Shown here piece after piece: positions 23,601 through 48,914 of a stretch of 64,000 bases of DNA. Within the stretch, counting starts at the first letter, position 1, and every line of letters starts with the position of its first letter. The position numbers and the translations under genes were made by a program. This stretch comes from Mytilus californianus (taxonomy: Eukaryota): the NCBI RefSeq assembly GCF_021869535.1, contig NW_026262668.1, positions 71,548,001 to 71,612,000 of the forward strand, read 5' to 3'. The notes under the pieces are model-generated. The model did not search any database. It saw only the letters and a list, made by a program, of their open reading frames with translations, and was not told the DNA's origin.

Positions 23601-26600
23601 GCTCCGTGTTGAAGACCGTACTGTGACCTATAATGGTTTACTTTTATAAATTTTGACTTGGATGGAGAGTTGTCTCATTGGCACTCATACCACATCTTCT
23701 TATATCTATATAATATTGTGACCAAGGTAAAATAAAAAGTATTTTTGTGTTTAGTAAATCAAATCTTGATCATTAAATGGTTGCTATAATTTTGATGAAA
23801 AAAATATCTGCGAATCGATTTTAATGTAATGAAAAAGCAGTAGTTCCAGCCCAATCCCCCAAATGTTAGGCATTTATCAATAGATATAAGAAGATGTGGT
23901 TTGAGTGCCATTGAGACAACTCTCCATCCAAGTCACAATTTATAAAAGTAAACCATTATAGGTCAAAGTACGGTCTTCAACACGGAACCTTGGCTCACAC
24001 CGCACAGCAAGCTATAAAGGGCCCCAAAATTTACTAGAGTGAAACCATTCAAACGAGAAAACCAACGGTCTAATCTATATAAAAAAACGAGAAACGAGAA
24101 ACACTTATGAACCACATCAACAAACGACAACTACTGAACATCAGATTCCTGACTTAGGATAGGTGCAAAAAATTGCAGCGGGTTTAAACGATTAATCAAT
24201 GTTCCATTTAGTTTTGATAAAGTATATATATTATTGCGCTTTAATCATTTTTCAGTAATGGAATAGAGTGTCATGCGCGGCCAATTCCGGAAATACCATA
24301 CGATACTCATATGATGTAATAAAAAACTCATCAAATATACCAGGCTTATAATTTTGAACGCCAGATGCACGTTTTTTTTTTACATAAGACTCATCAGTGA
24401 CGCTCGAATAAAAAAGCTGGAAAGCCAAAATAAATACAAAGTTGAAGAGTATAAATATCCGAAAATTTCGAAAAGTTGAATCAAATACGGATAAAGCAAT
24501 CGATACCTGTGGGTAGAAAAACTTGAGTGTTTTGAATACTTCCACATTTTATTTTAACAGTAATGTACAGAAAACGAAATGATATTTTATGTCAGCACAA
24601 AAGTGCTGACTACTGGGTTGGTGATACCCTCGTGGACAAAACACCTACCAGCATTTGAATCAAACCAGTGGTTGTAAAAACTCATCAATGATACCAGGCT
24701 TATACATTGGTACGCCAGACGCGCGCTTCGTCTACATAAAAATCATCAGTGACGCTTCAATCAAAACAGTTTGATAGCCAAATCAAATACAGTATGGAAG
24801 AGTATAAGTAACCGAAAATTTCGGAAAGTTGTTCTAAATACGACTAAGGTTATCTTTACCTGGGGATAGAAAACCTTAGTGTTCTGAATATTTCAACATT
24901 GCATAAACAGTACATTTACAGAAACTGAACATATCAATAATATTTCATGTCAGAACAAAAGTGCTGACTATTGGGCTGGTGATACCCTCGGGGACGAAAC
25001 GAAATGACATCGATCTATTGGTTGTAAAATTTTCAAATCAGTTGAAGAGTATAAGTAACCAAAAATTCCGGAAAGTTGTGCCAAATCTAGCTTATGCAAT
25101 CTGTACCAATACAAGAACAATGATGGGTCAACATGAAATAAACGATGATTTCATAATGGGGGAACTACAGATTTACAAATTGCATAAAAATTAAATGTCA
25201 TAATATGCCTTTTGTCGCCTCAATATCTAGAAGTTACTAACATAAAAAAGTTTGATCATTAAAATCTTCTAGAAAATTAGATGTGAATAAAAGGAGATGT
25301 GGTGTTTGTGTCAATGAGACATCAAACAAACGACAGCGTGAGATCAACATACAGTCTTGAACAATAGACAGATTTTTATACAATATGTCAAGCTCTAAAA
25401 TAGCTGTGAATAAATTAAATGATCTGCTTTCAACACTAAAGTCTCCAAATAACAAACAAAAATATGACATAAGACAACAACTGACGAGGTGTCTGACTTG
25501 GGACAGGTAAATGAATATGTTACGGTGTAAAACCAGTTTATTTTTTAGATCTTATCCCTCCCAATTATTAATCTCGATCGGTTGACAAGCAAAAGGTAGA
25601 TATAAGAAATTACAAAAAAAAAACCTAATACAGGAAAAGCAATTAACTTTAAAACAACGGTATCATACAAGTATATACAAAACAATTCCTGGTCGTGTAA
25701 TATCTTTGGGTTCGAAATGTCCACTAGTAGCGACATCGATCCACTTATTGTAAAAAAACTCATAAAAAATACATGTCTTATAACTTAGTATGCATGACGC
25801 GCGTTACGTCTACTTAAAACCTATCAGTTGCGACTCAAATTGAAACGTGTCCAAAACACCAAAATAGTGAAGTTGGTACGTTCGAACTCTTGTTCAACGC
25901 ATGTTCAAATATTTTAACTCAAATAATTTAGTGACATGTAAGAGATAAAAATAGTACCTGTTTAAAATTGAATCTTGCGGAAATAGTTATATATACGATA
26001 TTATCACTTACCCAAACCATCTTCAACTTTTACCAAGTCATCCTTAGCATCAGGCACTTTCTTTTTCCGCAGAAGACAATAAAGAATAATTAACAATAAT
26101 GAAATAACCAGTAAACCACCCAGTACGGCGCCAACAATGGGCCATATATTACTATCGTTGGAATCAATAGCAGCTGACTCTGTTGTGTTAGTCATAGTTT
26201 CTGTCGTGGTTGCTTCCGGTGCTGTTGTCGGAGTTGTCGTTGTTGTGGTAGAAGTTGTCGTTGATGTTGATGTGGTGGTTATTTCTGTTGAAATTATTTG
26301 ATAATTATTAATAAATAAAAAGAAATAACTTTAATTATCATTTCACTCAAATAAGTGCAGTGCACCAGATTTGCTGTATGTTATATAGTCAAATTTAAAT
26401 AAAGAAACACATTAAATGGATTAATGTATAGCTGTGATGTTTGAACAGATGCTTTCGGAATAGTAAACAAATTAGGTGAATGAACTTTAGTGAAGAAGTT
26501 AGTACATAAAACATCTCCCTCCAAAAAGTGATCCTGCATTTCAGATTTTTTCATAAGAAGGAGGTGATATCCAGGGAACAAAAAAAAGGATGACAAACGA

Positions 26601-29600
26601 ACATACGAAACATAATTTTAAAATTATCTGCCCAAAACATCTGTTAAAATTTGATACTTTTAAAATTTGGATTATAAAATAATCGATATCATTACCTAGT
26701 AAACTTACAATAAAGGCGGGATATTTATAATCACAAAGTATATTTTTTTTCATTATTAAAGTACTAGACCAACATTTTCTTTTGTATATTACAGGGACGG
26801 AATTATAAAAGGGATAAAACTATGTGTTCCGCGATGATCTGTCGAACATTGAATCATTAAATGTGGTTAAAAAAAGAGATTTAGTTTGAACAGTTTGTAT
26901 TTAATGTTTAAACCTTTATTTTGAGAGGGGAAATGTTGATAAAATATATTTTTCTATTATTGCATCAGTTGGTATTTTTGTCCCAGGAAATGTGGTGTTT
27001 GATATAACGTTGAGGACCAACAAAGAACCAATATTGAAACTTTGTGGTTACCCTTCCGGAGCGCCTGAGATCGACCCCGGTTTTTGGTGGGGATCGTGTT
27101 GCTGAAGTCTTTCATTTTCTTTGTTGTGTTTTGTGTACTGTTGTTTGTGTTTTGGTCTTTTTCTTTTTTTTTTTGCCATGGCGTTGTCAGTTTATTTTCG
27201 ACTTATGAGTTTTAATTTGGTATCTTTCGCCTCTCTTGGTCAAAGTGTGTCTCGTAAATGTTACATAACAAATCTGACATGATATATTGAGTTAGTTATC
27301 CTCTTCCCAGATAACATGTATCGTATAATTAGAAATGGCGGTTATGCTAATTGTCCGTCGGGTAATTGAAAACAATCATCAAAATTGAAACAACGGTTGG
27401 CCAACGCCAAATTCTGTTCAAATTTACGAAACAGTTTCGGATTATTTTCGGCAGGAAAGTAAACAACGTACGCCAGTTACAAAGTGATTTTACTGATCCA
27501 AGGTCCAAACTTTACTATATCTTAAATTGAATACATTGATGGTAAATGAAAGTGTAAAAAGAGGATCATCCAAGACCATGCAAGAAAAAAATCAGGCCTT
27601 TAGCTTTCTCGTTTGAATTGTTTAACATCTGTCATTTCGGGCCCTTTTATAACTTGCTGTGTGATATAGGTTTTTTTTATTGTTGAAGGTCGTACGGTGA
27701 CATATAGTTGCTAACTTCGACGTCATTTGGTCTCTGGTGGAGAGTTGTCTCATTGCCAATCATATCAAATCTACTTATTTTTATAAAGACAAAACATAAT
27801 AGAATGTAATACTAAAACTTTAAAATTAGGGCGCACATACTCATAAGAAGACACACTTTCATATTTATAGGATGCAATAAATAGCAAACAGTGTGTTTTA
27901 AGTTTTATCCCCCATCAGTACCTAAAACAATTTATCTCCATTGATGGAACTAAAAATAAATTGGCCTTCCAATGTAACTATATTCTACGTTTTTGTCGAT
28001 TTAATGTACTTTCTATACAAATGTTCACTTGTTTCTTTTAAAGAATTTATTCAGTTATATTTCAGAAAATAAAAAGAGATAAACACATTATTTTTTTCTG
28101 TTTAAGTTTAATTTATCGAAGCTGTATACAAAATTTAACAAAAGTCTGTGACATGATCCATTTACTGTAGTATTGAGAGCGGGTTTTTTTTATACTAGTT
28201 TTTATAAACGTTCATCTAGATGACCGAGGGCAAAAGAGGTATGTGCTAAAGAAACAAGTTTTACCGAATCACATGTCCATAAGCCTTTTTTAAGTCAGAA
28301 ACCTCGTGTGATTTTGTTTTGGCAACACTTTTGTGTTGGTAGCCTTTGCGTATCTATGATGGTCTATGTTAAGTTAAATCTCTGAATTAAACAAAAATTG
28401 GTGCATTCCACCAAAATCTAAAAAACGCTTGATAATTTAGTTTTTTGTGGAATTCTTGTTCCGGTTTTTTTTTCTATTTATTATTGTTTGCTGTTATGAA
28501 TGTTTTTTATTATTTATTGTTTTGGTGTAGATCTCTTAAGATTTTATTTCTGAAATGCTTCCCAAGAAACTTAATTTTATCTATACATACCACATGTACC
28601 TGGAATATGAATAAATATGAATTATTATGCTTAAATACATAACATTCTATAATTTTTTTTAACACATGGCATTCTGAATGGGTAATAATAAAACATTGGA
28701 ACCACTGTGACTTTTACATGCAGTACCTTGTCTCTTTTATATTTTTATTTTATAAATTTATAAATGCATTTTTCCCCTAGTCATTTTAAAAATGTTAAGA
28801 TTCATATTGACAGACACATTTTCAGTAACGGATTATGGTTGTGTTATACACGATCATACCTAAATAACGATTTCTATATTATATAAAAATATTTATATTG
28901 CACATTTAAAATCATATAATCATACCATTGGGGGTTAGTGTAATCAGTCCTCCAGAAGAAGTTGGTCTTGTGTTGTATTCCTGATTAGCAACACACTGGC
29001 CCGGTGTATATGTCACCTGAATATCTCCTGATGCTGCATTTTGGACTGCCTAAGAATAAAATCAACAAGTTCACCTTAATTTTCAAAAGCTGTTGAGAAT
29101 TTTGTTTATCGTCAAAAATGTCTAAGACTCGGATGACTATCAGTGATATCATAGAATTAGTTTTTCCATCTGAATCATCAGAGACTGAATATAAAATTCA
29201 TTGTTCTTATACCGAATGAACATAAAAAATAAATTTATGAGTTTTGATTTATTTTTCGATATAAACCAATAACATTATTTTTTGTAATAAAATTATTACC
29301 AAGCATTCAAGATTTTCTTAAAATGGAGAATTCATTTTTAAGTTTTTAAGTTAACATTATTGTAAGAAAGTTTGTGCTGTTAACGGTTATCGTTGTATTT
29401 TTGTCTTATCTATCTAGTTAAATATCTTTCCCTCCTTTTTATTCCATTTTCTGCTGCCCTTTAAAATGTGTTAACCCAATATCACATGATTTGTACCCTA
29501 GCTCTGCTGTGGCTATTGCTAAGCTTACCGCACAAGTGAATCTGAATGTAGTCAGTTGATTAACTGTATCGTCGAAATTATACAAAGACGTATAGTATGT

Positions 29601-32600
29601 CCCAGATGAATCATCGACGATAGAAGCAACACAACCAAGTCTTCCAAATACTGCATTAAGATAAGAAGATTTATTATTAAAACACGATTTAAATATGCTA
29701 TATCTCGTCGCATACTTGAAATATTGTGTACCGCTTTCTTTTGTTGATTAAAATAATGTATTTGGTTGTCTCTATTTTTTTCTTTTTAACATTTCATGTA
29801 CCTTCGACCTTTTATAGCTTGTCCAATGGTATGTGTCATTGTCAAAGGCAATTATATGACGAGTAAATGTGTATATATTGAATTTGTCTTGACATCTAGA
29901 TGGTCTTTTTGCCATCAAGGTAAGCATTATCTTTTTCTTATTGGTTAATGTATCCTTATTTTTATCACACAAAAGAACAGATCAATACAATTCTGGATCC
30001 CTTCAAAATCGTTCCAAAGCCCACAACAGCTGGACATTTATAAACCTTAATTGTGCTTCAATGGACACTCATTCATAGCACATGTAACAGAAAACGGTTA
30101 AATTGGCATCACCGTAAATATCCATCCTTCATTGTGAGCAATAAAAACTAAATGATTCTTGGCAAAAATGTTTCTATTTGTCTTATTACATTTAATAAGT
30201 ATATATACTAGTATCAACAGAAAAGCACCAGAGAATCCAAGTTTTGTCAAATCGAAAAATGTGTAGCTAATATATGTATGCAAGCGACTGACATAACGCG
30301 AGGTTAACTTTTAAGTTTGACAAAGTCAACACTAGCCTCTGGATTGATTTTTCTTGGGTTGCTGCCTCATCGACGTTTACCCCACATCTCATTTTATTTA
30401 TATCTATATCACGATTTTACTACATACACGTATAAGCTATGGTAGTGGCACATTTGTCGTAGTAAAAGTTCAACTCTTGTCTGCTAGGACAAACTGAGAC
30501 AAATCCGTTGTCCGGCGAAGAACATTTATCTGTTCCATCATTGTTGAAAACGTAGGTAAAATTTCTGTAAAGAGGATCTGGGCAATCAGCTAAAGCACTT
30601 TCCTCTGAACCTTTGAATACAAAATAAAAAGATGTTTTAATGTCAATTTAATGAAACTTTTATGGGGAAATTACTGCACAAAGGTGTTGCAAATGAATTT
30701 TTTAATTTTATCATTTTTAATCCTTTTATTAAAATATTTCAGATGAACCATTTATATCTATTTATCAATGTTTGGATGACTGTTTGATGTCCTGTTCGTC
30801 CATGTTTCTATTCATCGAATTTGATGTGTAGGTATGACTAAAATGAACATATTTGCAAGCAAAACAAAAACCAGTTTAGAACACTCAATCGCACACGAAA
30901 AGAAACAAAAATGACTCAACATTCTTATGAGTTTTGTAAGATTTCTTCCATAGAAAGAGCAAATAATCACGACAAAAACCATTCCCTAATTTACTACTTT
31001 TGATGAATGTTTTAGTGGAAAATTTTGACTGGAACTGATAAAGATAAAAAAGTATATTATATAACAGTCAACTGATTAGCTACAATGAAAAGTTGTTTAA
31101 TGTAGAATAGATGAATTACATTCGCTGTAACATCCAATATTTCATATATGTAACATTATAAGATTTACACAGCTAGATATTCAAAAAGGCTTCTAACGAA
31201 TGAAATGACCGGTCAAACAGTTAGATATGCATGTATATCAAAGGAAATTTTAACAAGAAAAGAGCTGTCAAAACCGTGTTTTCTGTATTTTGAAGGCGCT
31301 TTCAAACTTGTTTGACCTGCCACTTTCTGTGCCGAAAATTGAAAATTGTCAAAATTGAACTTAACCTCCATTTTGTCATCAGTAACAACAGATCAAAGTT
31401 TGATAATATTGGTGGAACGGTTCTTTAGTAATTATACGGAAACGACATAGAGTGCCGTTCTCAAAACTACCAACGACCATATCTCCTGAATGGTAAAAGG
31501 ATGACGACGGATATGTTCCAGTTGTCGTAACTACAATCCCGTCCCCTTTTCCAGAATGTGACCAACCGAATTAGACTTATCACCGGGTTTGTACTTACAT
31601 GAGCAACACGACGGTGGAATAGGATCTGTTAAAGCTTTCGGAGCACCTGAGATCATCCCCAGTTTTGGTGGGGTTCGTGTTGCTCATTCTTTAGTTTTCT
31701 GTGTTATGTTTTGTGTTCTGGTGTTTGTCTGTTTGTCTTTTTTTCTTTTTTAGCCATGGCGATGTCAGTTTATTTTCGAATTATGTGTTTGAATGTCCCT
31801 TTGGTATCTTTCGCCTCTCTTCTAAGGTTCTCAAATAATGTAATAAGATTAAACATAATTATTATTGCTTTAAGTTTAAAAAATCAAATACTCAAACTGT
31901 ATATTCAAAAATATTGGTTTTTACGCAATAAAAAATCAAGTAAAAACAAACAATCCATTGATTATAAATATGAATGACTGTTAAACCCCAATCAACTGAA
32001 AAGTAGACAAAAATATAATTTTCACCAAAGCCTGATTAATTTTTGGGATAATAAAAGAATTATTTTACCTGTCCTGACCATGCTTATGAATTCTGCCTTT
32101 GATGGTGTTTCTGTGCAAATTTCTGTTGCATTTCCCGTTGCATTTAAAACTCCAAATATATGTATTCGCTCATTACCTATAAATATATTTTTTGCTGCAA
32201 TGGAAAAAAAAAGAACTACAACAACAGCATTATAGAAGTTCATATGACAAAACAAAATTAATACATATTTTTCATATAGTATCATAATAAATACTGGTTA
32301 TTTTTTTCTTAGTAATGATAGGCAAACGCTTATTGTTCTTTCTTTTTTTCCTTATTTGAACCTGATTCTGTCAATGTCTCTTTGATTAATAAATGTTAGT
32401 ATTTCTAAACCAGTCTTGTGGGACTGATTGGTAATTGAAAACATTAATAATAAATCTTTTACACCTACTAAACGACTATTATATTGAAACATTGAATAAT
32501 TAATGAGTGATCGTTTTGGTTTTTTTAATATTTATTTTGACATATAAGGTTCTAACGAAAATCGTTATTCATCTTCCTCAGATTTTAATCAGGTATAATC

Positions 32601-35496
32601 CATGAAAAAGAAATGAAGTAAAAAGTAAAATAACAAAAATACCGACCACCAAGGAAAATTCAAAACGGAAAGTCCCTTAACAAATGGTAAATTCAAAAGC
32701 TCAAACACATCAAACGAATGGAAAACAACTGTCATATTCTGGACTTGGTACAGGCATTTCCTTATGTAGAAAATGGTGGATTAAACCTGATTTTATAGCT
32801 AGCTAAAATTAAAGCAAAAATATTTTCAAATTTGCACTTACAAATAAATCCAAGACTGAATAGACAAATAGTAGTTTTTGTTAATGTTTTGTACTTACGA
32901 GAATTCATATAGAAGTAATAGCTATTGTTATTGACTGCTGTTGCCTCCATGCAGATAAAAGCAACGGAATCAGCTTTATATAATACAAATATTTCAGACC
33001 TGTAAAATATTTTTAAATTTAAAGTTTTCTTTACAATTGTGTTAGTTATTGGTAAGAACATTTCTTTTTTTTTTATTATTATATTTAGTTGAAATTCTAA
33101 TTTATGCAGACTTGAATTTCCACATTTTGCAAACCGCTGGAAAGAAATAGACCAATAGATAAACTAAAATCTACAAAACATGAAGCAGACATCAACATAT
33201 TAATGAAAGCAAATCCCACTAAAATCAAGAGCCAACTTAGGTGTTCCGGTCATAAACCAAGGAAAGAGAATGGGATTTTGACTTCAATAAATGGAAAATA
33301 TTCAAGGTAACAGGCATTTTAACTTTTCTTTTTAAATCACCTCTTGAATTACGAAGGTAATAAAACTATGTTACAGTTTGATACAGGACAATTCAAATAA
33401 CGCGATGATGAAAGTCTAATAATGTGTGATTGTTTGCATTTATATACACAATAAGATTTGATAGACGGAAATAAAGATAGCTCTTTACATGATGGAACGA
33501 CACACAAGGGGTTTCAAATGCTGAACTGACAAATTGTGAGGTTTGTGCGCACGTAAAACTGATTTTAATCCCACAACATTTGCGAAGTTCATTGATAATT
33601 GTCCTGTTATCCTTTTTATGTGTTAATCAACTTCTTACTGTACGAAATGACGCGTAACAACAAAATGTGCCGCGCAAAGAATGTTTTTACCAAAAGAGAA
33701 ATAGGTTGAAGAACTCGACAGAACAAGATAAAGTCTCGTTTTTCAATTTCAATAATGGACATGATCTGTTTGAATACACCGAATTCCAATGGGGATTATT
33801 AAGTTTAACATTCGATGTCATTCCAGTACTCTTTCCCTATCAAGGCGTAACTGAATAAAACATCCAAACAAAAGCACACAAATGGTCAAACGTCTACGTG
33901 AAGGGTAAAAAACACATAAGCTTTAGCATAATCCGACTCAGGTCAAGTATGAACGAAATTCATCTAATTAAAGAAAATACATTAACAGTTACGCTACTAA
34001 TCAACCAATAAAAGTACAGGATATTTATACAAGATATAATTATGACTTAAAAAACTCGCAAAAGGGTCGTTCACTATTTATTTACATACAATTCAAATAC
34101 GAAGCAATATCCAATTTTGATTTGTAATAAAACTATTAATAATTAGGGAAATAATGCTGAAATGATATATCTAAGGTAAAGTATTACTTTAACTTTACAC
34201 ACAAACAGTCAGATTATAAAGTTTGAAAATGAACTGATATCAAATAAAAGTATATAAATACCTTAAAATAACATATGGCCCTGTAGAATTATCATGACAT
34301 GTCCAGTCGGATGAAGTCTTTCCGTTTATATTGAATGCATGACTTCCTAAAGTTAATACACTACTAGTGACGGTTATTTGCTCGTAGTCGTTACTCGTCC
34401 ATGATCCAACTAAGCTACTGTCAAACGTGCAATCAGCACTTACTAGAAGATAAACAGTATCTTAAGTATATTAAGATGCGGAATAGAGCATAAATAGGAT
34501 TATAAACGGTCCACAAACAATTGAAGATTGGGCAACAGATAACCCACCAAAGCCATGGGGATATTAGATGTCGTTTAAGGGTACACAGTTCCTGCTCCAA
34601 TAGTGTCTGCCGACGTGTTGCGCATGACAATGTACACAATAAAATTAACTGGAAAAGTGTTGTTAAAATTATTGTATAATTTTACTTAGACTAAGAGTTT
34701 TATTACCTGCTCAAAATAAATTAAAGGTTATTTTATGTGGTTGATTATATGGTCAGGTTCTTATACAATATGTTGTATGTATTTGGCTCTCCAATCTTTT
34801 AACATTGTAAATCAATCAAATGTACTCCAAATGGCAAGACCTATACACAAAAATGATTTAAACAACTAAAAGAGCACACTTTAATGGAACAAATGCGATC
34901 ATTTATAATTGCCATATTTACTTTAGGCAAGTTTTGTTGTTACAACCCATACGAGATACCGCCATATCAGTTGCTTTGCAAATCAGGAAACATTTTGGAA
35001 CAATACAGTCTATACAAATACCACACATTTTATCGATTTATTTGGAAATCCAGGTTCGATCCGCAACAAAGCAACAGAAAAAAAATCAGACCATTACTGT
35101 ATTAATGAAAAAGAAGATTTCTGTAAACAAAAAAAATACAGCTCAAGAAGATTTTATCATTTTCGCTTGTCCAAGACGGGAGTAGACACAAAGTCGGAAA
35201 AACTTCTATATAGTCTAATAGTTCCAATCTTATTGATTAAAACATGTCTCTTCTTTTCTCGTAAGAATTGAACTTACAATGCCCCGTAAAATGAGTTAAT
35301 CTATAGTTTGTAATCAATAATTTTTTTTCCACAAAATATGAGTATTTGTCCATTGTGAGTAGGTGGAATGATCAAATCCAACGAGTTATATTGTATGGAA
35401 TAACAATTAAAGCTTACCTACTGGTTTATACTTACCAGACTGAATGTGAAGAACAAACAAGAGTTCTGATAATAAAATACATCCTTTCTTATCCAT
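14690..35496 (-). CDS. Paralog P2, type I membrane protein, 963 aa. Exons 35496-35436, 34442-34262, 32999-32899, 32194-32069, 30610-30428, 29650-29529, 29049-28926, 28599-28591, 26284-26012, 23551-23444, 18777-17488, 15874-15743, 14871-14690
   Basis: All introns GT-AG, phases consistent, summed CDS 2892 nt. Signal peptide MDKKGCILLSELLFVLHIQSVSA, 12 ectodomain Cys, Thr-rich stalk, TM IWPIVGAVLGGLLVISLLLIILYCLL followed by RKKK, and an ~560-aa low-complexity tail that includes the 436-aa track ORF. The last two exons are less certain. Confidence 0.85.
15547..15590 (+). ncRNA. Minimal type-I hammerhead ribozyme motif, subfamily ii, core intact
   Basis: tcatca-CTGAAGA-ga[catgaattt]tc-GAAA-tgtgca-TC-tgatgc; 5-bp stem I, weakened stem II, cleavage predicted after 15584. 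Confidence 0.7.
19976..21336. repeat. Near-perfect 681-bp tandem duplication
   Basis: tgacaaaaggtg at 19976 and 20657; only a few differences seen (ttgttc/ttggtc, ttatcg/ttaacg, T-run length). Confidence 0.95.
23134..23223. repeat. Foldback/hairpin element; related arm sequences at 22024-22095, 22349-22400 and 19752-19795
   Basis: aaaggtatatactatgaaatt...ggggcaagcccc...aatttcatagtatataccttt. Confidence 0.8.
24358..24403 (-). ncRNA. Degenerate hammerhead motif, subfamily i, in tandem array
   Basis: gcgtca-CTGATGA-gtc[ttatgta], then GAC-GAAA replaced by an A-run, then cgtgca-TC-tggcgt. Confidence 0.6.
24712..24755 (-). ncRNA. Degenerate hammerhead motif, subfamily i, in tandem array
   Basis: gcgtca-CTGATGA-ttt[ttatgta]gac-GAAG-cgcgcg-TC-tggcgt. 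Confidence 0.65.
28591..28599 (-). CDS. 9-nt microexon of P2 (GTACATGTG, G-T-C)
   Basis: ttattcatattccag|GTACATGTG|gtatgt; phase 1-1; positional match to the P3 microexon. Confidence 0.75.
31500..31824 (+). mobile_element. 5'-truncated PLE-derived 3' UTR repeat. Other copies at ~3135-3270(-), 27050-27237(+), 39750-39980(+), 49397-49585(-), 53172-53345(+), 55990-56045(-), 56300-56620(-)
   Basis: Begins at the PLE ORF end (MTTDMFQLS*). Shares ggtggggttcgtgttgct...ggtatctttcgcctctctt with the RT-bearing copies. Confidence 0.75.
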
Positions 35497-36111
35497 GTTT
35501 TAATGTTTATAATGCCCTTTCCACCATTAATATATAGAAGTTAGTATTACAATAAAACCCATTGAATAATTTGGACTATTTGTTTAAAACAAATGAAAAG
35601 GAACATTAGTGATATTTTACGATTTCATGGGGTCACGGGTAAGGTAAGACTAACGTTAAATGCTTTGACTTCGTAGATGTTAATCGAATAAATAAAGCTT
35701 TCAATGGTTTCCATACAGTTTGTCCCATAACTTTCCCTTGTTTGTCTCATGGTATTCATTTATATTCTCTCTTAGTATTATTTTTTTTCTAATTTTAGTA
35801 ACAATGAGTGTGCTCTTAACTAGAATAACATTCATAGGGGAACTAGTTCGACTACTGAAAATATTTATATTCTCATTCTGATTATTTCACTTTGTATCTG
35901 TTATGGTTATTTATTTCTATTTATTTCTTTTTACGTCCGGTTTGGCTTTCTAATTTACTTATTTAATTCAACCAACTTAAAATGTATCTATTTACTAAGT
36001 GATTTGAAACCTACAAGCCGTAAGTTAGGTTCTTTTTTTAAAGAAAGCGATAAATGGAAGGCATGAGTCTGGTGCACCTAAGCCCTAGAAGCTGAAAGTT
36101 ATTTGTACAAA

Positions 36112-36120
36112 CACCTGGTG
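36112..36120. promoter_or_regulatory. Palindromic CACCWGGTG (E-box-containing) site in the P2/P3 divergent intergenic region; identical 9-mer at 9581-9589 upstream of P1
   Basis: Only two occurrences noticed in the window, each near the 5' end of family members. Confidence 0.35.
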
Positions 36121-36774
36121 GAAAAGTTGCAATTGTGTACTTAACAGTAAGCACTCATCTAAAAAATGAATAAATTCATACTTTTTTACTTTTTGAAGTG
36201 CAGTGAAAGTTTTTAATGTTTTAAATAATAAAATTATGTCTTTTTTGGGTTTGATTGTGTTGTTAGATGCTGTCTCATTGATGAATATTTCAGATCTATC
36301 TTCACCTCAATACAGAATAGTTTGATGTGAATGTATAAATGCAGTGTCAACAAATTAAAAAACGCAAGTCATTTAAATTTGTTTACAAATCATTTCAAAA
36401 TATTCCTTTGAAATAAGTCTACATTTTTGTAAAATATTTTCGATGTTTCTATTAACATATACATTCTATTGGTCTGTTTAACAACCTCTCTTTTATAATA
36501 TTTATATTTAAATACATGGTGTTTTAAAAATGAAATGATTTTTACGACTTCTAATTGTAGGTAATTAATCTGGTTGTTAATATCAACACATAGATAATAA
36601 ACATGAACAAAGGTAAAATAACACATGCAATATTGAGTTACAAATTTAAAATCTTGTCTATTGTTTAAACAGTAAAACATGCGAAAAATAATCTAAAATT
36701 GTTAATTTCAATGGCATGTTTTTGCCATAGGTTTAAATAACCATCCTTTTGTAAAATATCAAAATGAAGAAAAA

Positions 36775-39700
36775 ATGTTACATGTTATTTTAATCTTTGG
36801 AGTATTTCTGATGGATCAAGATGTTGGTACATGACGTAAAACTGCTTTATGGCCTGTTCCTATTAATTCGTCAAAGTTGTAAGTATTTGTGTGTGTGTGT
36901 GTGTGTGTGTGTGTAGTTTCATAATAAATATGAGCCGTTTCACATACTTCGTTTGCCGATACAACTCATATTTATGTCGCATCAAATCAAATAATCACAA
37001 GATTGACACATCAACATATTGATGGCACCAGAAAAACTATAACTTCTTAAGCAACATCAGTGATACAGACAAAAAGCTCCCTTAACAACTAAAAAAACAA
37101 TGAAAGTTATGGTTCCTGTTATAGTTGCACAGTATTCAAGAATAATAAATATTCAAAAATAAGAAGATGTTGATTGATTTCCAATTAGACAACTACCCAC
37201 CAGAGACCAAAATAAGCAACTATAGGTCACCAAAAGGCCTTCAACAATGAGCAAAACTCATACCATACGGTATAATCAGCTAAAAAAGACTCAACATAAA
37301 AAAAGTGAAACAACCAAAAGATAACCGAAAAAACAAATATGACAGACCGCAACAAACAACAATACCCATGCAACTATTTCTATACAAAAATCTGCTTTAA
37401 TATTTATTTGAAAAATCTTTTCCATGTTTTCCTCTCATTAAATTTCCGAGTTCAGATGAACCATTATCAAACATTTCATTTGAAGTATCTCGCTCGGCGG
37501 AAGACACCTTACTTTACCTTTTCATGGTTTTTTAAGGTGGGCTATGTACTTATCCAAGTGACTTACGAGGAACATGGTACGACAGTGTTTATGGGACTAT
37601 CGGCTTTACAGATTCTTCTATGAACATGCAGACGAAAGCATTCGTTACGGGTTTCACCAATACAAACTTTACTTGTCAAATAAATAATGGAGATCTGTAT
37701 GTATCAAAGTAAGTAAAATAGATAAAACAGTACATGTATGAAAAGTAATATTCATTTTGTAGTTCTTTTATAATTGTTATTGATCTATTATTTTTTATTG
37801 TTGTTGCGTATCAAAAAACTCCTTTTCAAACAGAACATAAAAAGCGAGAGAAAAATTAAAACTAACTATATGTATTATAATTTTTTATACATATAGGTAA
37901 CACAGTTTTGAATAATCCAAAAAACTGTATTTTTATCATTAAGTATTGAGTCAGTATAAACATCTGGCATACAAAGTTATAAGCCTGGTATCTTTGATGA
38001 GGTTTTAATAAGTGCTATTACCTTTATGGGATATTTTGTACGACTTTATTTTTTTTTTTTTTTGTTACAAATGAATTTTATTTTGAAGAGTATGACCATT
38101 TCATTGGTGCATCTAACCAAACACAAAAACCCTTCAAAAGATATATAGACATCAAAACACGGTCTTCAACAATACAATGAATGTATATTGTTTGTCTATA
38201 AATAAAAGAGATATATATCCTATAAATGCTTCTTTGTTTGAATTTTTTCAGAAGTGTTGAGGCTGTCACGCTAGGTATTCTGGGTGGTTTTACTGTTAAT
38301 GTATGGATATGTTTTGAAATAAAATCATTAACGACTTCATCATTCTATTATTACCTCAGATCAAGTAAGTGTTTTTTTTCTCCAATTGATATAAGAATAA
38401 AGTTCGTTTTTTGTCACCGTTTTAGGCATTATCTGTTTTAATGCTCTGCAACTCATTTGATTAGGCCTTCTTAATGTTTTGATTCGAGTGCCACTAATGT
38501 GTCTTACGTAGACTAAACGTAAACTTATCTCGCGTACCAATTATAAATCTGCTATCTATGTATTTTCCGTGTATATTTTTTTAAGTTGAAAAGACATGCT
38601 CGTTAACAGTACATATAGATTAAGTCTTTGACAATATATTTCAGAGGATCAAGACAATTTGAATTTTGGCGATGTAGTCCCCGTTGCAACAACGGTTTCG
38701 ACTGTAACAGAAGCAGATGTATGTAATACGTCGCCAGGAGTCGGTGAATTCCATATGATAGTAAATCCTGGTGAGTTGTTTAGATTGACTGATATAAAAC
38801 ATGAGTTATTTAGATTGACTGATATAAAACATTTTCAAGCCTTTTCAATTTCATAAAATTGCATATGCGTCGCGGTAACCGAGGTCAAATATTTTCAATT
38901 GCATTGAAAATATGAATAAAATACTATTTTGAACGGTCATTACACCAAATCAGTATATTTCTATGTTTTCGGGATTATTTCGACCGAAACCCCGGCTAGG
39001 CACGCCATTTCTCTTTACTAGATATTCACACAAAAAAAAACAAAAAAAAAAAAACCAAGAGACTCGTTCTAAATCTTATGTTCTACTGATCTCCTTAAAA
39101 ATTAAAACAACACGTTCGAAAACGATTTTCTGTGTTTACCTTCATAAAAAACGTTCACGTCCAAAAATTTGAAAGCCAATGATGTATAGCTACCCAAACA
39201 CGTGAAGAGCTATATGATCAAGAGGGACATTAAGAATAATAAAATCCATCTAACTTTATCATTAAGCTGTGATTAATATTTGATTACTTTGTATAAATGA
39301 CAAAGAAAACCAGAAAAGCAGACTGCTACAGTAATAGTTTATAGGAACTCCAAACAAGTCATATAAAACAATCTGGTTTAAGTACATGATTATTGTAAGC
39401 CTAAAATGGTACAAATGTCTGCGTTTTCTTGTAACACTATTCAATTAATATATTATACAGCTTCGTCAAAAGAAGGATTAAGTGCTGTTCCTGTACCTTT
39501 GCTTGGTGATTTTACCTATTCCATGAACTTTGGAACCGATTCATCGCAATGTGGAGCATCTGCTTTCTGGGAAAGTTGTTCTAATACAACTATTATCACT
39601 CTAAATAATACTGCCTGTGGAAGTCAGTTCGTTGGATATTCAGGTAAATGTATATAGTAGATATATATGTTTCGTACTAATATTCAATAATGTTTAAATG

Positions 39701-42700
39701 GGTTTTAAACATTAAAAAAACGGTCAGTTTTCAATGAAAACAATGTCTTACAGGAGCAACACGACGGGTGCCACATGTGGAGCAGGATCTACTTATCCTT
39801 CAGGAGCACCTAAGATCACCCCCAGTGTTTGGTGGGGTTCGTGTTGCTCAGTCTTTATTTTTCTATGTTTTGTGTATTGTTGTTTGTCTATTTGTCTTTT
39901 TCTTTTTTAGCCATGACGTTGTCAGTTTATTTTCGACATATGAGTTTGGATGTCCCTTTGGTATCTTTCGCCTCTCTTTTACAATGAAGAATGTCTCCAG
40001 TGCACTGATGGAATATCTTCCTTTTTGTCTTTTCAGATTGACGAGGTTGCGCATAAGGAATTTGTAAATTCGTTTTTCAACTGAAACATTTTAAACACTC
40101 ACATTTGTGGTAACCAAAGATAGTTCCGTCCTATTTTCCTCCTATAACATAAGTTATTGGAGAGTATGGCCTGACCCATCGAAAGTTTAATTTAGCATAA
40201 GAGACACGATAAATGTCACTTGTGCTTTCCATTCTCAGCATCTGATTTTTTTAGTGAGATTCGTGTTTCTCAGGCTATAATTTTGAATATTGATTTTATA
40301 TATGTCTTTTTTAAGTATGGACATGGTATTGTCTGTTTTTCGTCCCGTGATAACTTCTTATTGTTTTGCACCAGATCATTTTTGTAAAGTACTTTTAGTT
40401 TTTTAGTTTAATTCACAATAATCCAAAGTATGATACATTTGAAATGCATCTTTGAAATATTTTTACAAAAGATAGATCATAGCAGCTAACAGACGGAATA
40501 TGTAAAATACTTCAATTGGCCGTGATAAAAAAAAATAAAAACCGAACTTAACGCGTGAAGAATACGTGTATCTAAATAAAAAAACACATATTGTGATCAA
40601 TTAGAGACAACAGTTGTTTACCGATGGATAAATCGCCTAAATACATTTAGAACATACAAATCAAGGGGAGGGGGTCAAAGGCTTAAGAAGTCGAATAAAC
40701 TCCAAACGGAGCACGATCTGGTGGATTGACATGATAAGCGTCGTCTGATGTACAATGTACGTGCATACCTCGCCAGGCGAATCCAAACTCGATCGTCCCA
40801 TGTCAGCACTGAATATATGATGCAAACGTATGAAAACGCCAGGATTTATTATATTGACCTTACAAATATAGCAAATCAACTGATTTTTAACAGGGATGTT
40901 CTTAAAAATGTAAACTCTATTTAGATAGTTTAAAAAATAAAGATACACAATTTTAGCAAATTCAGCGCTATCACGCAATGATTCAATTACGTATGAAATA
41001 CATACAAGTATCACTATGAAATCTAAGTCACACATGTAAATTACCAATTTGGTAAAATTTGTTTCTTTTATTTAAGCAAAGTTTTTTCATTCTTTTTACT
41101 TGTATAATAGATAGTTTATAGGTGTGATGTCATTTCTTATGCAGTTTCTTGTTGAGCTTAAATCTTGTCTACTACTGACTATCATAAACACACATTATTA
41201 ACCTGGACAAGCAACTATGCAAAAGCGCACAATTTCTTGGGTTTTTAGCGGAAACCTATTACCCTAAGTACCAAAACAAATGATAAAAAAAAACACAACA
41301 TAAATTCAAATTCATCACACAGTTACATATAATAAATGAATTATTTATTATTACATTCCAGCTTCTGGATCATTAGGTTGTATCATATCAGTGCAAGATA
41401 CAACAAGTACCAGTGTTTACTACGTAGGGGTTTACAACTTTGATTCTACGGTCAATGGAGCGTCAACAAAGCGATTTACGTGTTTCGTGAGTAAAACAGA
41501 CATTCTTATGTTACATTCTGTTTTTGTTTATTTTGGCTATCATATTATTGCTTTACATGAAGTGAATCGAGGGTTAATACAGAATCGCTCGCATGTGCAC
41601 CTACATATACGCATCTTCTGGTAAGACTTAAAACAGAGACTTTATGTTGTAATTGTGTTTATGTAGTCGCATGCCTAATAGAGATCATAAATTGGCCTAT
41701 CAAAGATCGAGTATTCACAACCCCCTCCCTCCCACAAAAAAAACCGGCGCTAATTGCCGTCTTAAACTTGCAGTAAGGGAAAAGATTTTTGCTCCTTTTT
41801 GAAGACCTCACTGTGACTTTAAGATGAAGAACAGCAATAAAAGCGCTGTTCCTTTGCTTTTTGTGTTTTTTGCTGTGCACATACTGATTTTGTGTCATAA
41901 ATAATTATATCCTCCTGACATTAAAGTCAGGATACTCCAGCTCGTTTCAAATTTTAACATACCAAAATGCTTTCCCAATCAATGATATACATATGATAAC
42001 AGGAATTACTAAAATGTTAGACGTACAACAAACTACACCAACCACTAACAACCGACTCCACCAAGAAAATAGATGTACAAACAAAGACAAACATAAACAA
42101 ATAACATATGGTCCTAACTTTGTACAGACACTAAATAATGTTAAACCAGTTGTGCATGCGTATCTATATAGACAATATGTTGTAAAAGAAAATACAAAAT
42201 AGAAAACCTGAACAGTCCAGCTACCAACCGGATGAGTATAAACACTTATTTGCATATTTGAGCCTTGTTATTTACTTATAACTTCATTTACGCGTTGAAA
42301 ATTGACTGATGGAAAATTAAGTCAAATTATGTGCCAGTTATAGTATATGTAGTTAAACTTTAATAGCTCATAAGGGTGCTCAATCAGTTCGGTATTTTTG
42401 TTATACTTTTTCCCTCGCTCCTCCAGTTCTATTAATATTACTTATTAGACCTTTAATTATTACTTGGTGTTCAATAATTGAATGGAGAATCATGGATTTT
42501 TAAAGAATTTTCCAAAGGTGAGCATTTGAACATTTTCGCTGACAATTCTGTAATGGAGAGAGCGATTGCCAACAATTATATTCGAAATGCGAACAGGATT
42601 CTTAATAATGTGAGGTCTTGAAATTCTTTTTATATTATTTTTAGACGGTGGAATATGATACAAATATTACAATGGTCAGTCAAAGTCCAAATAAATGTTC

Positions 42701-45700
42701 ATCAGGTTCCAGTCCCACGGTTCTGCCTACAGATGGTGCTCTTCTTCAACTCACAACTGTCAGTAAGTTGGTAAAAATACAAGTATATTGATTTCAAAAG
42801 ATTCAATATATTGTTTTTCCCTTAAGTTTCATTTTTAATTTTAACGCAGCATAAAATTAAATAAAAAAATGTCAAAAATTGTCATTTTTGAAATATGGTA
42901 TGTTTGAAGAATGTATCATATTCAGAAAATCAAAGATGACTGTTTGATACGTTATGCCTCGTAACTTTTAGTCAGTATCACCAACGAATAGATAGGGTAA
43001 ATATTGCTTTATGCATAGGTCGGAAGGATAAAATAAGGGAATATGAAAAGAAATTAAATTTAAAGGAAAAACTATTTGTTATTAACAGAACAAAAGAATA
43101 GACCTGAAAGGGACTTGGTTCAGCGAGTGTCAGTGATATAAACATTGATTTCTGCAACAATAGTTTGATTCAAAATTTTATATATTACGCTATTGTTTCT
43201 GTTACGATTGTTGGCTTACATTCCGCCGATATATTACATTTAGTATAATTGAATATCCAACTTTTCTTGGGCTCCTACTTTTGTTTTTACAGTTCGGGGT
43301 GTACTGTTTAATTTACTTGTACAGGAAAAACGAGAGTAGCAGTTGTACCCTTATATCATTCAAATATTGTTGTACTTAGTTATGATCTGATGAGTTATGT
43401 TTTTATTCTAATTAACAACATGTACATTACAATCATATTTACCCCCATCAAACAGATAAACGTGGTGTACAGTGATTGCTATTGTATTCTTGTTATTTTT
43501 TATTGGGTTTATGTAATTGACTTGGTTGTCTCTTTTTGAAATTTTAACATTTGGTTTTCTGGGGAAGCTTCATAGCTAAAATTACGATATCCATTATTGA
43601 AAGCCATTGTGTTAATGGTCACCTTTTTGGGTTTGATGGATAGTTGTCTCTGTTGTTATTGCACCGCATCTTTTATACATATAACACTCACATTGTAACA
43701 TGAAGACCGGGAGATTGCCACTTGTTAAAAAATCATTTTTGTCGGCTAAACACTCCAGGGGTAAACAAAAACACTTGTCGGCTCTGAGTAAAATATTGTT
43801 TTCTAACCTGGCACGTTAAAGATACTGTTAGCATTTTATTATTGTACACATTAGGGCTAATGCTGATACAAAATTGATATGTGTTTGGCATAAATATGTA
43901 AACTACCGTACTCGACGTCAACATGCACCAATCTTATCGTGCTTTTTTAATAATACTAGTAAATGAAATGTTTCCTGGTAGCGAATAGGATGCTGAAGCA
44001 TGTGATTTTGAATAAATAATTCAGTATCATTGTATAAAAAATAAGTTAATTTGAGGCAACTAAACGTTACAAAAACTACATAAGCGTCCTTACAAACATC
44101 TTTATATTGCTGTGTCTCCAATACACAAAACCTCTTTCCAAATTATTTTATCAGATTTCAAAGCCTAGTTTGAGAGTTACTATTAAGTTTTCTACCTAAA
44201 GTGAGGTTTGAATCAGATGCAGATACTAAAAGAATCAAAAGATATGTTAGAGTGCATACACTCTAAGTCCTTTTGCAAAAGTATATCATAATACATTTGA
44301 CTTCTCTATCCTTTTCACTAATATTCCTCTTTCTAAACTTAAAGACAGATTGTTATAATTAGTTCAACTTTGTTTCATAAAATAGAATTTTCAATGTATA
44401 TAAAAATATTTTATTTTAGGACGGAATAAGTCATACTTTGTGAAAAGCCACTTTCATTTTAAACAAAAATTCTTTGAAACTGACATTTACAAGATGTTTG
44501 ATTTTTTTTGTAATGACGACACTCTGTACTTATGTATCCCGTCATACTTTGAACGACAAAATTATTTTATTTTATTAATATTACTTTTACTGTTAAGTCT
44601 GTTTTTTGTGATATCCATTTGACGTGACTCTGTACTTATGTATCCCGTCATACTTTGAACGACAAATTTATTTTATATCTACCTGTGTGACGTCAAACGC
44701 GCGATTCTACGCCAGATCTTAAAACCTTCCATCCTTTGTGGGTGGATTTTACATAGATAAATAAAATCGTATAATAAATAAGCAATATGAGGATGTTAAA
44801 TTTGTTTTATGCATTTTTGTGCTACTTTGTTACATTTGTTTGTTTTATAGTGATTAAGATGATAACACAATGTTGACTGCTGTACCCCTATTTTTGACAT
44901 TTTTACCTATTGTGTCTGTTATAAAACCAGGTTAAATCCACCATTTTCTACATAAGAAAATGCCTGTACCAAGTCAGGAATATGACAATTGTTATCTATT
45001 CGTTCGATGTGTTTGAGCTTTTGATTTTGCCATTTGATTAAGGATTTTCCTTTTTGAATTTTACTCGGAGTTTAGTATTTTTGTGATTTTACTTTTTGTT
45101 ACGTTTTGAGGACCTGTTTTTCAACAGACAATCGGTGTTTCTGTAGGAACCAACTGTTCATATCTTCTTGCCGACTTGTTCTTTTAATTCATACGAGGTA
45201 GACTTTATACAGAACCTTCCCAGTGACATTTCAGCAGCGCCTGCATATGGAGAAAATATCTCCCAGTTGATACGATACTACAGAGCTTGTGTTTCCTTCA
45301 TGATTTTCCTTGATTGCTGGTTACTGCTTACAATGAATCTATTGAATTAAAGATGCTTAGTGGTAAAGTTGATGCCATCCCATCGAAAGGTTTATAGACA
45401 TCATCATGATTTAGTTAACAATTATGAAATATCCGTGTCACAGATGACCACTGATATGTTCTGATTGTCGTAGCTAAATCCCGTTCCTATTTCCAAGATT
45501 ATAACATCACAAAATGAGACCTATCACAAAATGTGTACTTACCACGAGAAACACGACGATGCCACTAGAGGAGCAGGATCTGTTTACCCTTCCGGGCACC
45601 CGAGATTACCCAGATTTTGTTAATAGTTTTATTGTTTACTTTTTTTTTGTCATTGTTTTGTTGGTCTCTCTTCGACTTATGAGTTTTTATTGTCTCCTTG

Positions 45701-48700
45701 GTATCTTCCAACATGAACATATTTACATAGTAACCAGGGAGGATATTAGGACTTTACAAAAACAATTCGAAGGTATAGTTTTATAATGAAGTAATATTTG
45801 TAAAGGCAATATAAAAATCCTTATGGACTGTGATTCCTGTTTCTTTATATAATTAACACACAGAAATGCATAGCATTAATAGTAATTAATGAGTAGTAAC
45901 ACCATTATTGTGCTCCTATGTTTGATTTAACATTATTGCTGTCATAAACCATTACAATTTAAAACTTGCCATAAAGTAATTATCAAGAATATAATATGCA
46001 CCAGACATGTCTTTTACTTGAAAGATTAGTAACGAACTTGAAATTGTGTGTATATTTTAGGCAAAAACAACGTATATACTATCATGCAGCTGGTGAATAT
46101 ATCTGGTTTTTGGTAATGCATGCTATTGAATGTGTTGAAAACATTTCGTTTCATTAATCATGTTAATTAATGTTTTTTTTAAATTTAATTATACACTATT
46201 TTCAGCATCCTGTGGTGAGTATCACCTTGTTTTAAATTCTTTGTACACCTGATTGATTACTTTACAGAAACAGCAATATATCAATCAACCGGTCCCAACT
46301 GGTCAATTCAATGAAATTTTCTCAAGAGTTATATTTTTGTCAATTAATTGCTATGTATTGAAATCAATGATACAGTAGTCGTTATCTTAAATACTCTCTA
46401 GTTCTATCGTACCAGTTCAAAATTCAACATTAGAATTTTCTTAATACCAGTATCATTGATCAAATTAAAATACTAGTTGAACTGACAACTTGATTGGTTA
46501 ATATCTGATGGTGTATTAGATTTGTAAACAAAAACAAATGTGTTAAATAATGATCTGTCAAATTACTTTAGCTTTTACAAAAGTACCGAGTCAGTACTAC
46601 AATATTGGCTAACCATTTGTTCTAGCTGATTATCTTTTATAAATATCTTGATATCAATGCTTGCTATGACTTTGGAGTTAATTTTGCACCGACCTTGGAC
46701 TTAAACCCATTATTATTTGCTATTCTATGTTCTATATAATTGATAAAAAAACAAACTTTAGTCGGTGAAATTTTTTCATCGATATCTATGGAAATCTTCA
46801 CTTTGTATGTGTATTACATATATCTTAATTGTCTACAAAATGTTAAATTATTCGCAAACTTAGGTTTTTCAGCCCCCAGGTATAGATTATCTTAGCTTTA
46901 TTTGGCACAAATGTCTTGACTTTTCGGTTTTTAATGCTCTTTGTTTACTTCGTATTTGACTTGGACCTCCAACTGTTTTGATTCGAGCAGCACTGACGAG
47001 TCTTATGTAGACAATACGCGCGGATAGCGTACAAAATTATAAACATGGTATCTTTGACGAGATTCTTAAATTACAAATCAGCCGAACATCAGTTTAACAT
47101 CTCTATTTTCAGCACCAGTATCCCCGCCAGATGATCCTCTGTCAATTGCAGAAATATTTGCAATAGTTTTCTCTCTTATGTTGGTCATATTTCTGGCTCT
47201 ACTAATTGGTATATGCCTTTATAGAAGATATATTAAAAAGCACACAAAGAAAATCATTATAAGTAAGTATAGACAAATTTCCATGTTCTTGTCAAACAGC
47301 TGATTGTAAATTGCACTAACTATATTACACACAGCAGTGGTTTACTGATGTTCAAATCTCATAAATGCATTAAGTAGATACTAATCAAGGTAAAAAGAAC
47401 AAAGACTTGGGGAATCCCTTGAACCCTAAAAGAAGCGAGACAGGGAAAGCGTCCCCTGTCATGCATGCATCTACCGCCATGTGAGTCTACTATAATATTT
47501 GATTTTTCAAAAAAAATCAACAGTAATAAACTTTCTATGTAATCAGCAAAAGCTATTAACCATATGCCACTAATTGTGATAAGTAATCAGTAGAAGTATG
47601 ACGAAGATGACTACAGGAACTGTAACTGTCGGCATTATTTCATTAGTTTTCATGAGTAGAAAAGTACACAAGCTAATATGAAAAAAGATTAAGAAAAATT
47701 CTGAAGACAATACAAAATTAAGATAACAATATCTGAACACAGACAAATTTCTGAAGACCATACAAACCAAAGATAACAATATTTTAAATCAGAATTGGGT
47801 GCGATCTTGGATTCGATTCTCGTTTTATATCTATATTTGGTATTATATGTTATTAAAAAATTGAAAGCAATAAGACAAAACCAATAGTTTGTTATCATTT
47901 TGTGATAAATGCACTTGTTATAAACATTTTATCTTATTTAATATTTAGTCATGAATCTGATTTTTTGCCATCGAACAGATCTTTTTCATATATAAATATG
48001 ATCTAAATCAAATACAAAAATGTTAAGAAAGTCTTCTCTTAGATTAAAGAGAGAGAATAAGTCCAAAAAATGTATTAATAGATGAATATTATTTTTTATT
48101 TTTTTTAGTTCCAAAAACCCTTCCTAGAGGAGCCCATACTGTATTTACTTTGTCAGACACCAATACCATGGTAAACAAGGAAATAATAACAGAGCCTAAA
48201 CTTGTTGTGAAACCAATCAGAAATGGGCAACCACAGAGCATGGAACTTCAACAATGGAAACACAACGCCGAGTTTCAAGAACCAGAAGGACAGCTTAGAT
48301 TAGTAACTAAACCTCAACCCCCTATAGCGACAATAGACACAATGAAAAGTCGAGTCGCAACACAGATGCGCGAAGATACTGAACGGAAACGCAACATGGC
48401 GCTCGTTATCGACAGAGTGAAAACTAACTTAGATAGAGAATTGCGTGTAATAGCAGTATTAAAAGCTAAGGATGCTGCGAATAAAGAGGCATATAGTAGA
48501 GAAGCAGCAGCCAGTAAAATGAGCCAGGCAGTATCAATTTTTCCACCTAAAAGTAGAATGGGTCAATATGTTCATGACCCTCAAGCAAAAAGTCGAACAA
48601 TGAGCATGCGCAAAAATAAAATCACAAATGGGACAATTAAAACAGCAGTGCATGACAATAGTTTTAACAATTCTTTTAATTATGATCCTAGAACTTCAAC

Positions 48701-48914
48701 ACCATTATCGATTCAGAGACCTTCTAGTATTGATATGGTTATGTCTGAAGCAAATTTATCAGTTTTTTCAGTTGATTTGAAACACAGAGCTTCCAAGACC
48801 CCAAGACCTCAACCAGATATAACGGTGACTAAAAAAGTTAGGGATACAAAGAAATTCCCAACAATTAAAGAACTAAGTAATATGCCAGGAGAATTTCAAA
48901 ACTTTGAACGGTGA
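36775..48914 (+). CDS. Paralog P3, type I membrane protein, 617 aa. Exons 36775-36826, 37537-37708, 38252-38364, 38645-38770, 39461-39643, 41362-41486, 42645-42762, 46206-46214, 47113-47262, 48109-48914
   Basis: GT-AG introns, same phase series as P2 through the TM exon, exon 4 and 5 lengths identical to P2 (126, 183 nt), summed CDS 1854 nt. Signal peptide MLHVILIFGVFLMDQDVGG, CTYPSDLRGTW motif, TM IAEIFAIVFSLMLVIFLALLIGICLY followed by RRYIKK. The last exon includes the 254-aa track ORF. Confidence 0.87.
36889..36914. repeat. (GT)13 microsatellite in P3 intron 1
   Basis: Direct reading. Confidence 0.97.
45103..45712 (+). mobile_element. Penelope-like element remnant with internal deletion
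   Basis: FQQTIGVSVGTNCSYLLADLF (GIPMG motif) joined to SDISAAPAYGENISQLIRYYRAC, then the decayed ORF end and 3' UTR. Confidence 0.8.
46206..46214 (+). CDS. 9-nt microexon of P3 (CATCCTGTG, T-S-C)
   Basis: ctattttcag|CATCCTGTG|gtgagt; phase 1-1; Cys codon at the same position as in P2. Confidence 0.78.

Follow-up and report, generated by a model that had tools for sequence, protein, structure and literature searches.

Can an exon of only nine bases be a genuine and lasting part of a gene, and if so, is it always spliced in or does it act as a switch? The question is raised by a 64 kb stretch of the 1.65-Gb Mytilus californianus assembly (C88:71548001-71612000, referred to as the window; positions without a prefix are counted from its first base), in which a six-frame self-comparison found three paralogous multi-exon DUF7042 genes, here named P1, P2 and P3. 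An earlier note on this DNA had proposed that P2 and P3 each carry a 9-nt microexon between exon 7, where the ectodomain ends, and the exon encoding the transmembrane (TM) helix, that this microexon delivers a single cysteine, and that splicing could switch one disulfide on or off by skipping it. We assign a probability of roughly 85% to the reading that the microexon is real, codes for part of a single-pass DUF7042 membrane protein of molluscs, is probably constitutive and supplies the twelfth cysteine (Cys 12) of the ectodomain.

Two nine-base exons and a predicted third

Both exons were found where they had been placed, with the phases and residues read for them. In P2, on the minus strand, the microexon (exon 8, 28591..28599) reads ttccag/GTACATGTG/gtatgt and encodes Gly-Thr-Cys in phase 1-1. 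It lies between exon 7 (exon F, 28926..29049), the last large ectodomain exon, which contributes the conserved Cys 11 and has a phase-1 end (CCCAATG/gtatga), and exon 9 (26012..26284), which begins in phase 1 (cag/AAATAACC) and encodes the Thr/Ser-rich stalk, the TM helix and the start of the cytoplasmic tail, so that the interval runs from 28926 to 26284. In P3, on the plus strand, the corresponding microexon (exon 8 of 10, 46206..46214) reads ttttcag/CATCCTGTG/gtgagt, also in phase 1-1, and encodes Thr-Ser-Cys. The interval here extends from 42762 to 47113, between exon 7 (42645..42762), with Cys 11 and the phase-1 end ACTGTCA/gtaagt, and exon 9 (47113..47262), which starts with cag/CACCAG and encodes a short stalk and the TM helix. 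TGT occupies the same position in both microexons, and the splice sites, described beforehand as strong, are canonical in P2 and P3 and strong in every one of the copies examined below. Both exons are internal, are shorter than 30 nt, have AG and GT flanks and fit the frame of both neighbours.

The expectation that skipping is frame-neutral also held, as the junctions flanking the microexon are in phase 1 in both genes. Joined with the microexon, the P2 junction is CCCCCAATG-GTACATGTG-AAATAACC and its product LTPN-G-T-C-EITTT; without it, CCCCCAATG-AAATAACC forms the same GAA codon and the frame holds. In P3, the junction with the microexon is AACTGTCA-CATCCTGTG-CACCAGTA, giving ..TTV-T-S-C-APVSPP, and without it AACTGTCA-CACCAGTA.

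Pairs of AG and GT are common in AT-rich introns, and several database models go straight from exon 7 to the TM exon, so the two sites could be chance look-alikes of splice sites in a long intron. A pattern derived from the P2 and P3 sites themselves (AGNNNNNTGTGGTRWGT) matched only these two sites on both strands of the 64 kb, where 0.02 matches were expected. It then predicted a third match in the equivalent intron of P1, outside the window, and this prediction was borne out: the intron reads ttctgtttcag/GTACTTGTG/gtaagt at C88:71547614-71547606 and encodes G-T-C. The P1 and P2 microexons differ at a single base, the synonymous third position of the Thr codon.

Presence in transcripts

An intronless cDNA contig from a sister Mytilus (L023, SRR13891792; 2002 nt, encoding 619 aa) aligns with all ten exons of P3, at 95-98% identity for exons 2-10 and 91% for exon 1, and each of its junctions has a single GT-AG solution in the window. 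In this contig, exon 7 is followed by CATCCTGTG and then by the TM exon, the nine bases being identical to 46206-46214 at 9/9 positions. The P3-type microexon is present in mature mRNA, and a chance origin is already refuted for P3. The P2 microexon would likewise be part of the mRNA, judging from the conservation between P1 and P2 and from the P1 model of M. edulis (XP_071153543.1), which reads LTPN-GTC-ETTTT.

Gene models of related species add to this. The M. edulis P3 protein CAG2229923.1 reads TTV-TSC-APV, and the M. edulis and M. galloprovincialis RefSeq P3 models end with ..TTVTSCGEY, meaning that these models splice into the microexon at its acceptor and read past its donor into the intron. 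The P3-orthologue model of M. coruscus (CAC5376046.1) is 99% identical to the L023 protein and lacks exactly the three microexon residues; since the L023 cDNA contains these residues, the skipped model is an annotation error. In Crassostrea, ITC or QTC is present in all short transcript-like contigs; K1RUF4, a model from 2012, instead has precisely the junction expected from skipping. In Pecten maximus, EPC is found in 9/9 RefSeq isoforms, which diverge from one another shortly after it, within the stalk.

The M. edulis P1 model XP_071153543.1 (P0169) also has an exon E end that is short by 12 residues near residue 256 (VNGLTTFRFTCA), including the conserved Cys 10. This gap could be due to an alternative donor or to a model error.

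Copies in other paralogues and other molluscs

A fourth paralogue, P4 (C105; 24-34% identical in exon D), carries ttacag/ATACATGTC/gtaagt, encoding Y-T-C, in the interval that separates exon 7 from the TM exon. A profile search with exon D retrieved 14 further paralogues, and in each of them the 10 kb downstream of exon D were scanned with a looser pattern, YAG-N5-TGY-N-GTRNG. Exactly one gene-strand match was present in 11 of the 14, and in all eight of these 11 for which the TM exon was found (8/8) the microexon match lay upstream of it. The opposite strands gave one match in total, and shuffled sequences 0.42 per 140 kb. Overall, the microexon is carried by 15 of 18 paralogues. No N was present in the window or in any fetched locus in which N were counted.

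Outside Mytilus, the genomic exon structure was checked in the abalone Haliotis rubra, where the corresponding two exons flank AGACCTGTG, which encodes Q-T-C and is included in XP_046563376.1. The earlier note had staked its proposal on homologues keeping the cysteine. Most do: the tripeptide occurs in sequences of other Mytilus, oyster, scallop and abalone, alongside the exon itself in the paralogues. The microexon hence predates the split of bivalves and gastropods. This split is roughly several hundred million years old.

When the 16 microexon copies were stacked, the bases showed unequal constraint. Bases 3-4 are AC in 14/16 copies, a feature that was not demanded by the search pattern, unlike the TGY that follows; bases 6-7 are TG in 16/16 copies, and base 8 is T in 15/16. 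Base 5, the third position of the Thr codon, varies freely in type (A in five copies, C in five, T in five and G in one). The donor reads GT[AG]NGT in all 16 copies, and the flanks of the microexons are unrelated between copies, the pyrimidine tract excepted. By this pattern, the microexon evolves like coding sequence. The codon-like substitutions, the 11 matches on the gene strand against one on the opposite strand and the 0.42 in shuffles, and the recurrence of the exon in 15/18 paralogues and a gastropod all speak against chance look-alikes with a direct joining of exon 7 to the TM exon, which leaves that explanation a practically negligible probability.

The twelfth cysteine and the predicted fold

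In an alignment of 45 ectodomains, 41 of which reach the last cysteine column, 12 cysteine columns are conserved, and the last of them, present in 29/41 of the sequences reaching it, is the cysteine of the microexon. The count given earlier for P2 was right, with 11 cysteines in exons A-F and the microexon cysteine as the twelfth, the last before the membrane helix. Cys 5, at the start of exon D, and Cys 9, in exon E (columns 5 and 9 of alignment A2; residues 166 and 224 of P0210), are lost together in five family members, and on the basis of this joint loss they probably pair with each other. By elimination, we infer that Cys 11 of exon 7 pairs with Cys 12. P3 and a few other members lack only Cys 5, which leaves their Cys 9 partnerless.

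The AlphaFold model of a P3 orthologue (m6d74c986bfda; pLDDT 89, pTM 0.85) has two beta-rich domains, and the ectodomain is predicted to consist of two tandem eight-stranded lipocalin-type barrels, with residues 25-162 forming the first and 165-300 the second. Residues 291-300 make up the last strand, the cysteine follows as residue 301, and the confidence of the model falls after it. Residues 26-158 compared with Tp0751, and residues 171-298 compared with YLR301w, each gave Z 8.8, where best Z values of 7-8 are typical without a clear match. Foldseek against the Protein Data Bank (PDB) returned nothing with an E of 0.001 or lower, and PDB sequences compared with the family profile gave no match at E up to 10.

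In the reading that we favour, the microexon encodes x-Thr/Ser-Cys, placed immediately behind the final strand of the second predicted barrel and ahead of the Thr/Ser-rich stalk and the TM helix. Cys 12 would then form an intramolecular disulfide with Cys 11, pinning the C-terminal strand of the barrel. The recognition of so short an exon could be ensured by its strong acceptor tract and a near-consensus GTAAGT donor.

A constitutive microexon would be compatible with a different partner for its cysteine. Placed where the folded part ends and a flexible stalk begins, Cys 12 might form an interchain disulfide, and hence a covalent dimer near the stalk, or remain a free thiol, and the cysteine count of P3, odd even with the microexon, could be taken in the same sense. 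However, the 12 conserved cysteines add up to an even number in P1, in P2 and in most of the homologues, and the Cys 5 - Cys 9 pair accounts for the odd count of P3. In addition, in the multi-module homologues (P0004, P0111, P0116) the same cysteine closes every module, including those that precede another module or EGF repeats instead of a membrane helix, which fits an intradomain role. An interchain bond or a free thiol thus seems unlikely, and the intramolecular pair with Cys 11 is retained as the preferred assignment.

Regarding the family itself, window exons were searched singly against Pfam, while full-length analyses used database orthologues. Exon D of P2 alone, which is one exon of the domain, scored 22.2 bits (E 1.4e-4) against DUF7042 (PF23069), below the gathering cut-off of 27 bits, and exon A of P2 alone matched DUF7044 at E 0.004, also below the Pfam cut-off. 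The full-length orthologues of P3 (P0210, 36.9 bits) and of P1 (P0169, 46.4 bits) passed the DUF7042 cut-off, as did P0003, which is P4 of M. californianus (46.1 bits). P0205 matches exon 7 of P3 at 100%. In most of the scanned proteins the DUF7042 match stops short of the microexon cysteine (in P0003, residues 115-232 correspond to profile positions 3-117 of 123). With its boundary before Cys 12, the modelled domain seems to hold an odd number of cysteines. A full-text literature search for DUF7042, DUF7043, DUF7044 or DUF7045 found no paper, and nothing relevant on a mollusc cysteine or disulfide microexon was found either.

Constitutive exon or splicing switch

Skipping in some tissues or states would remove Cys 12 and leave Cys 11 unpaired, so that a regulated cassette could turn one disulfide on and off, as the earlier note had suggested. 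The sequence allows for this, since skipping stays in frame and the junction codon GAA of P1 and P2 is unchanged. Two observations point the same way: the oyster-like, intronless contig L024 (P0125) lacks the nine bases and has the exact skip-junction codon, and a P1 model without GTC in M. trossulus stands next to one with GTC in M. edulis. On the other hand, the cysteine is conserved across the family and is included in every other transcript-derived sequence, from the oyster contigs to L023. The nine Pecten isoforms differ in the stalk and never at the cysteine, the skip model of M. coruscus is contradicted by cDNA of the same or a near species, and several other Cys-less models have evident truncations or splicing faults. 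Only 2/16 copies have TGC in the 30 nt upstream of the exon, which, as a weak test, speaks against the UGC element of the SRRM4/eMIC microexons. L024 is the only skipped transcript contig, with no included partner on record, and in the available contigs and isoforms no gene of a single species was represented by both included and skipped transcripts. The switch, therefore, found almost no support, and a regulated cassette is quite unlikely. Equally improbable in our view is that mussels skip the exon in some tissues or states and so produce receptors whose second barrel has a partnerless Cys 11 at its base; if this were true, a single shared splicing decision could alter folding, covalent dimerisation or redox sensitivity family-wide.

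Several observations nevertheless weigh against a constitutive microexon that supplies Cys 12 throughout the family. Within Mytilus, the transcript support comes from the P3 orthologue of a sister species, and no transcript of P2 was seen in any species; word searches with the P1 and P3 orthologues, in restricted length ranges, found no P2 orthologues. The M. trossulus RefSeq P1 model XP_063420701.1 joins exon 7 directly to the TM exon without GTC, as L024 does, and the M. galloprovincialis P1 sequence VDI27421.1 also lacks GTC; some skipping of the microexon might still take place. P3 has 11 ectodomain cysteines even with the microexon, so the parity argument holds for P1 and P2 and not for P3. 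Finally, the three paralogues L010, L018 and L019 are without the microexon, having no candidate of 6-15 nt.

These loci have features of their own. L018 (C165:62018989-62028988) and L019 (C165:62040113-62050112) are near-identical, and their TM exon has two cysteines of its own (C..QTC; ..NWFCSTMEMQTCYGIL..) just before the membrane helix, which could represent a different solution or a microexon fused into the next exon. In L010 (C165:48539699-48549698), at about 1191-1900, at least 10 copies of the 3′ end of exon E (..YYRFTCYVSTILH) follow one another with a spacing of 75 nt, and a similar series with a spacing of 26 nt is present at about 1630-1900 in L012 (C165:48516043-48526042, minus strand). 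Both series are minisatellites that copy the exon end together with its donor.

Consequences for annotation

The earlier note had remarked that gene predictors usually miss such exons, and the databases confirm this: RefSeq splits P1 and P3 at this very intron and mis-splices P4, and the M. coruscus model of P3 is three residues short. P1 is annotated as LOC127728126, covering the ectodomain and running into the intron (..LTPNGKVSKSVTNPM), and LOC127728069, which begins inside the intron before the TM exon. P3 is annotated as LOC127728124 (..TTVSKLVKIQVY) and LOC127728130, which begins at a Met inside the membrane helix. The P4 model XP_052103173.1 uses a false upstream acceptor and is without Y-T-C, and no annotated P2 protein was found. 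Models of other mussels, pearl oyster and freshwater mussel are three residues short or truncated. Such truncated, split or shortened models arise because the pipelines miss the microexon. Several of the Cys-less sequences are likewise bad models, as illustrated by P0077, whose TM exon matches the locus L013, where the genome sequence has the microexon. Curators could repair the family by searching downstream of exon 7 with YAG-N2-ACN-TGY-N-GTAAGT.

The tripeptide is already part of some DUF7042 models of other molluscs, such as Crassostrea gigas LOC105323006 (QTC), Pecten maximus LOC117328786 (EPC) and the Haliotis rubra model named above (QTC), in contrast to the M. californianus models of P1, P3 and P4, which are without the microexon. 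What is new here is the recognition of the pattern and of its consequences, and no new mechanism is involved.

Relation to known microexons

The closest known kind are the conserved ultra-short microexons that annotation misses, as described for plants, where constitutive microexons of 15 nt or less are conserved and absent from genome annotation (PMC8831610). The mollusc exon resembles them as a very short coding exon, long conserved, lying inside a folded domain and often omitted or wrongly joined (PMC8831610). It differs in belonging to one animal gene family, with which it has been copied, and in that its evident job is one cysteine. It would thus provide a clear animal case of a 9-nt exon long retained for one structural cysteine. 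The SRRM4/eMIC neural microexons of bilaterians are switch-like cassettes of 3-27 nt, mostly in surface loops of cytoplasmic proteins and with UGC near the acceptor. The mollusc exon shares with them its size, frame preservation and strong conservation, whereas it encodes a conserved extracellular structural cysteine and is present in almost every transcript found.

At the level of the protein, mouse APCDD1 (PDB 8e0p/8e0r) is also a single-pass membrane protein with a beta-barrel ectodomain, and the second barrel matches it at Z 6.2-6.3, which is in the common range and amounts to resemblance only. Membership of the APCDD1 family was considered and rejected, as the PDB profile search (E up to 10) found no sequence relation and there was no APCDD1-type Pfam match.

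Gene structures and repeats in the window

P1, a minus-strand gene delimited by self-comparison, has its exons between about 7669 and 2765 and continues outside the window, below position 1. Its exon 7 lies at 2765..2885 (minus strand), and its TM exon starts at C88:71546791, 814 nt past the microexon.

P2, likewise a minus-strand gene, spans at least the stretch between 34460 and 26012. Its ectodomain exons A-E, at 34460 (or 34442)-34262, 32999-32899, 32194-32069, 30610-30428 and 29650-29529, were defined by paralogy with P1, splice sites and open frame. When a local script joined the microexon and the TM exon to exons A-F, the frame ran through 379 codons with zero stops. The signal-peptide exon was looked for twice in 34462-36800 without success; an acceptor at 34460 would yield ..TVYLLVSA/DC, which is similar to the end of a signal peptide. 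Further downstream, a large open reading frame (ORF) at 17465..18775 on the minus strand is homologous to the tail of P1 orthologues (MMSQTEL..PWPWRTAKRAS) and most likely forms the cytoplasmic tail exon of P2.

The ten exons of P3 occupy 36793-48914 on the plus strand. Exons 1-6, at 36793-36878 (with the ATG near 36821), 37537-37708, 38252-38364, 38645-38770, 39461-39643 and 41362-41486, were placed by alignment with the L023 cDNA, and exon 10 (48109..48914) encodes the cytoplasmic tail up to the stop codon. P2 and P3 are arranged head to head with about 2.3 kb between them (34460-36793), and this spacing suggests a shared divergent promoter region.

Between the candidate tail exon and the TM exon of P2, the segment 19927-21400 is duplicated in tandem, with copies that recur about every 682 bp and are 96-100% identical. 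An interspersed repeat is found on both strands at 27044-27282, 31589-31977, 39734-40067, 49332-49597 and 53099-53314, in introns of P2 and P3 and downstream. It carries a recurring open frame (..GAPEITPSFGGVRVAHSLVF..AMALSVYFR.MS.NVPLVSFASL) and is likely a family of transposable elements.

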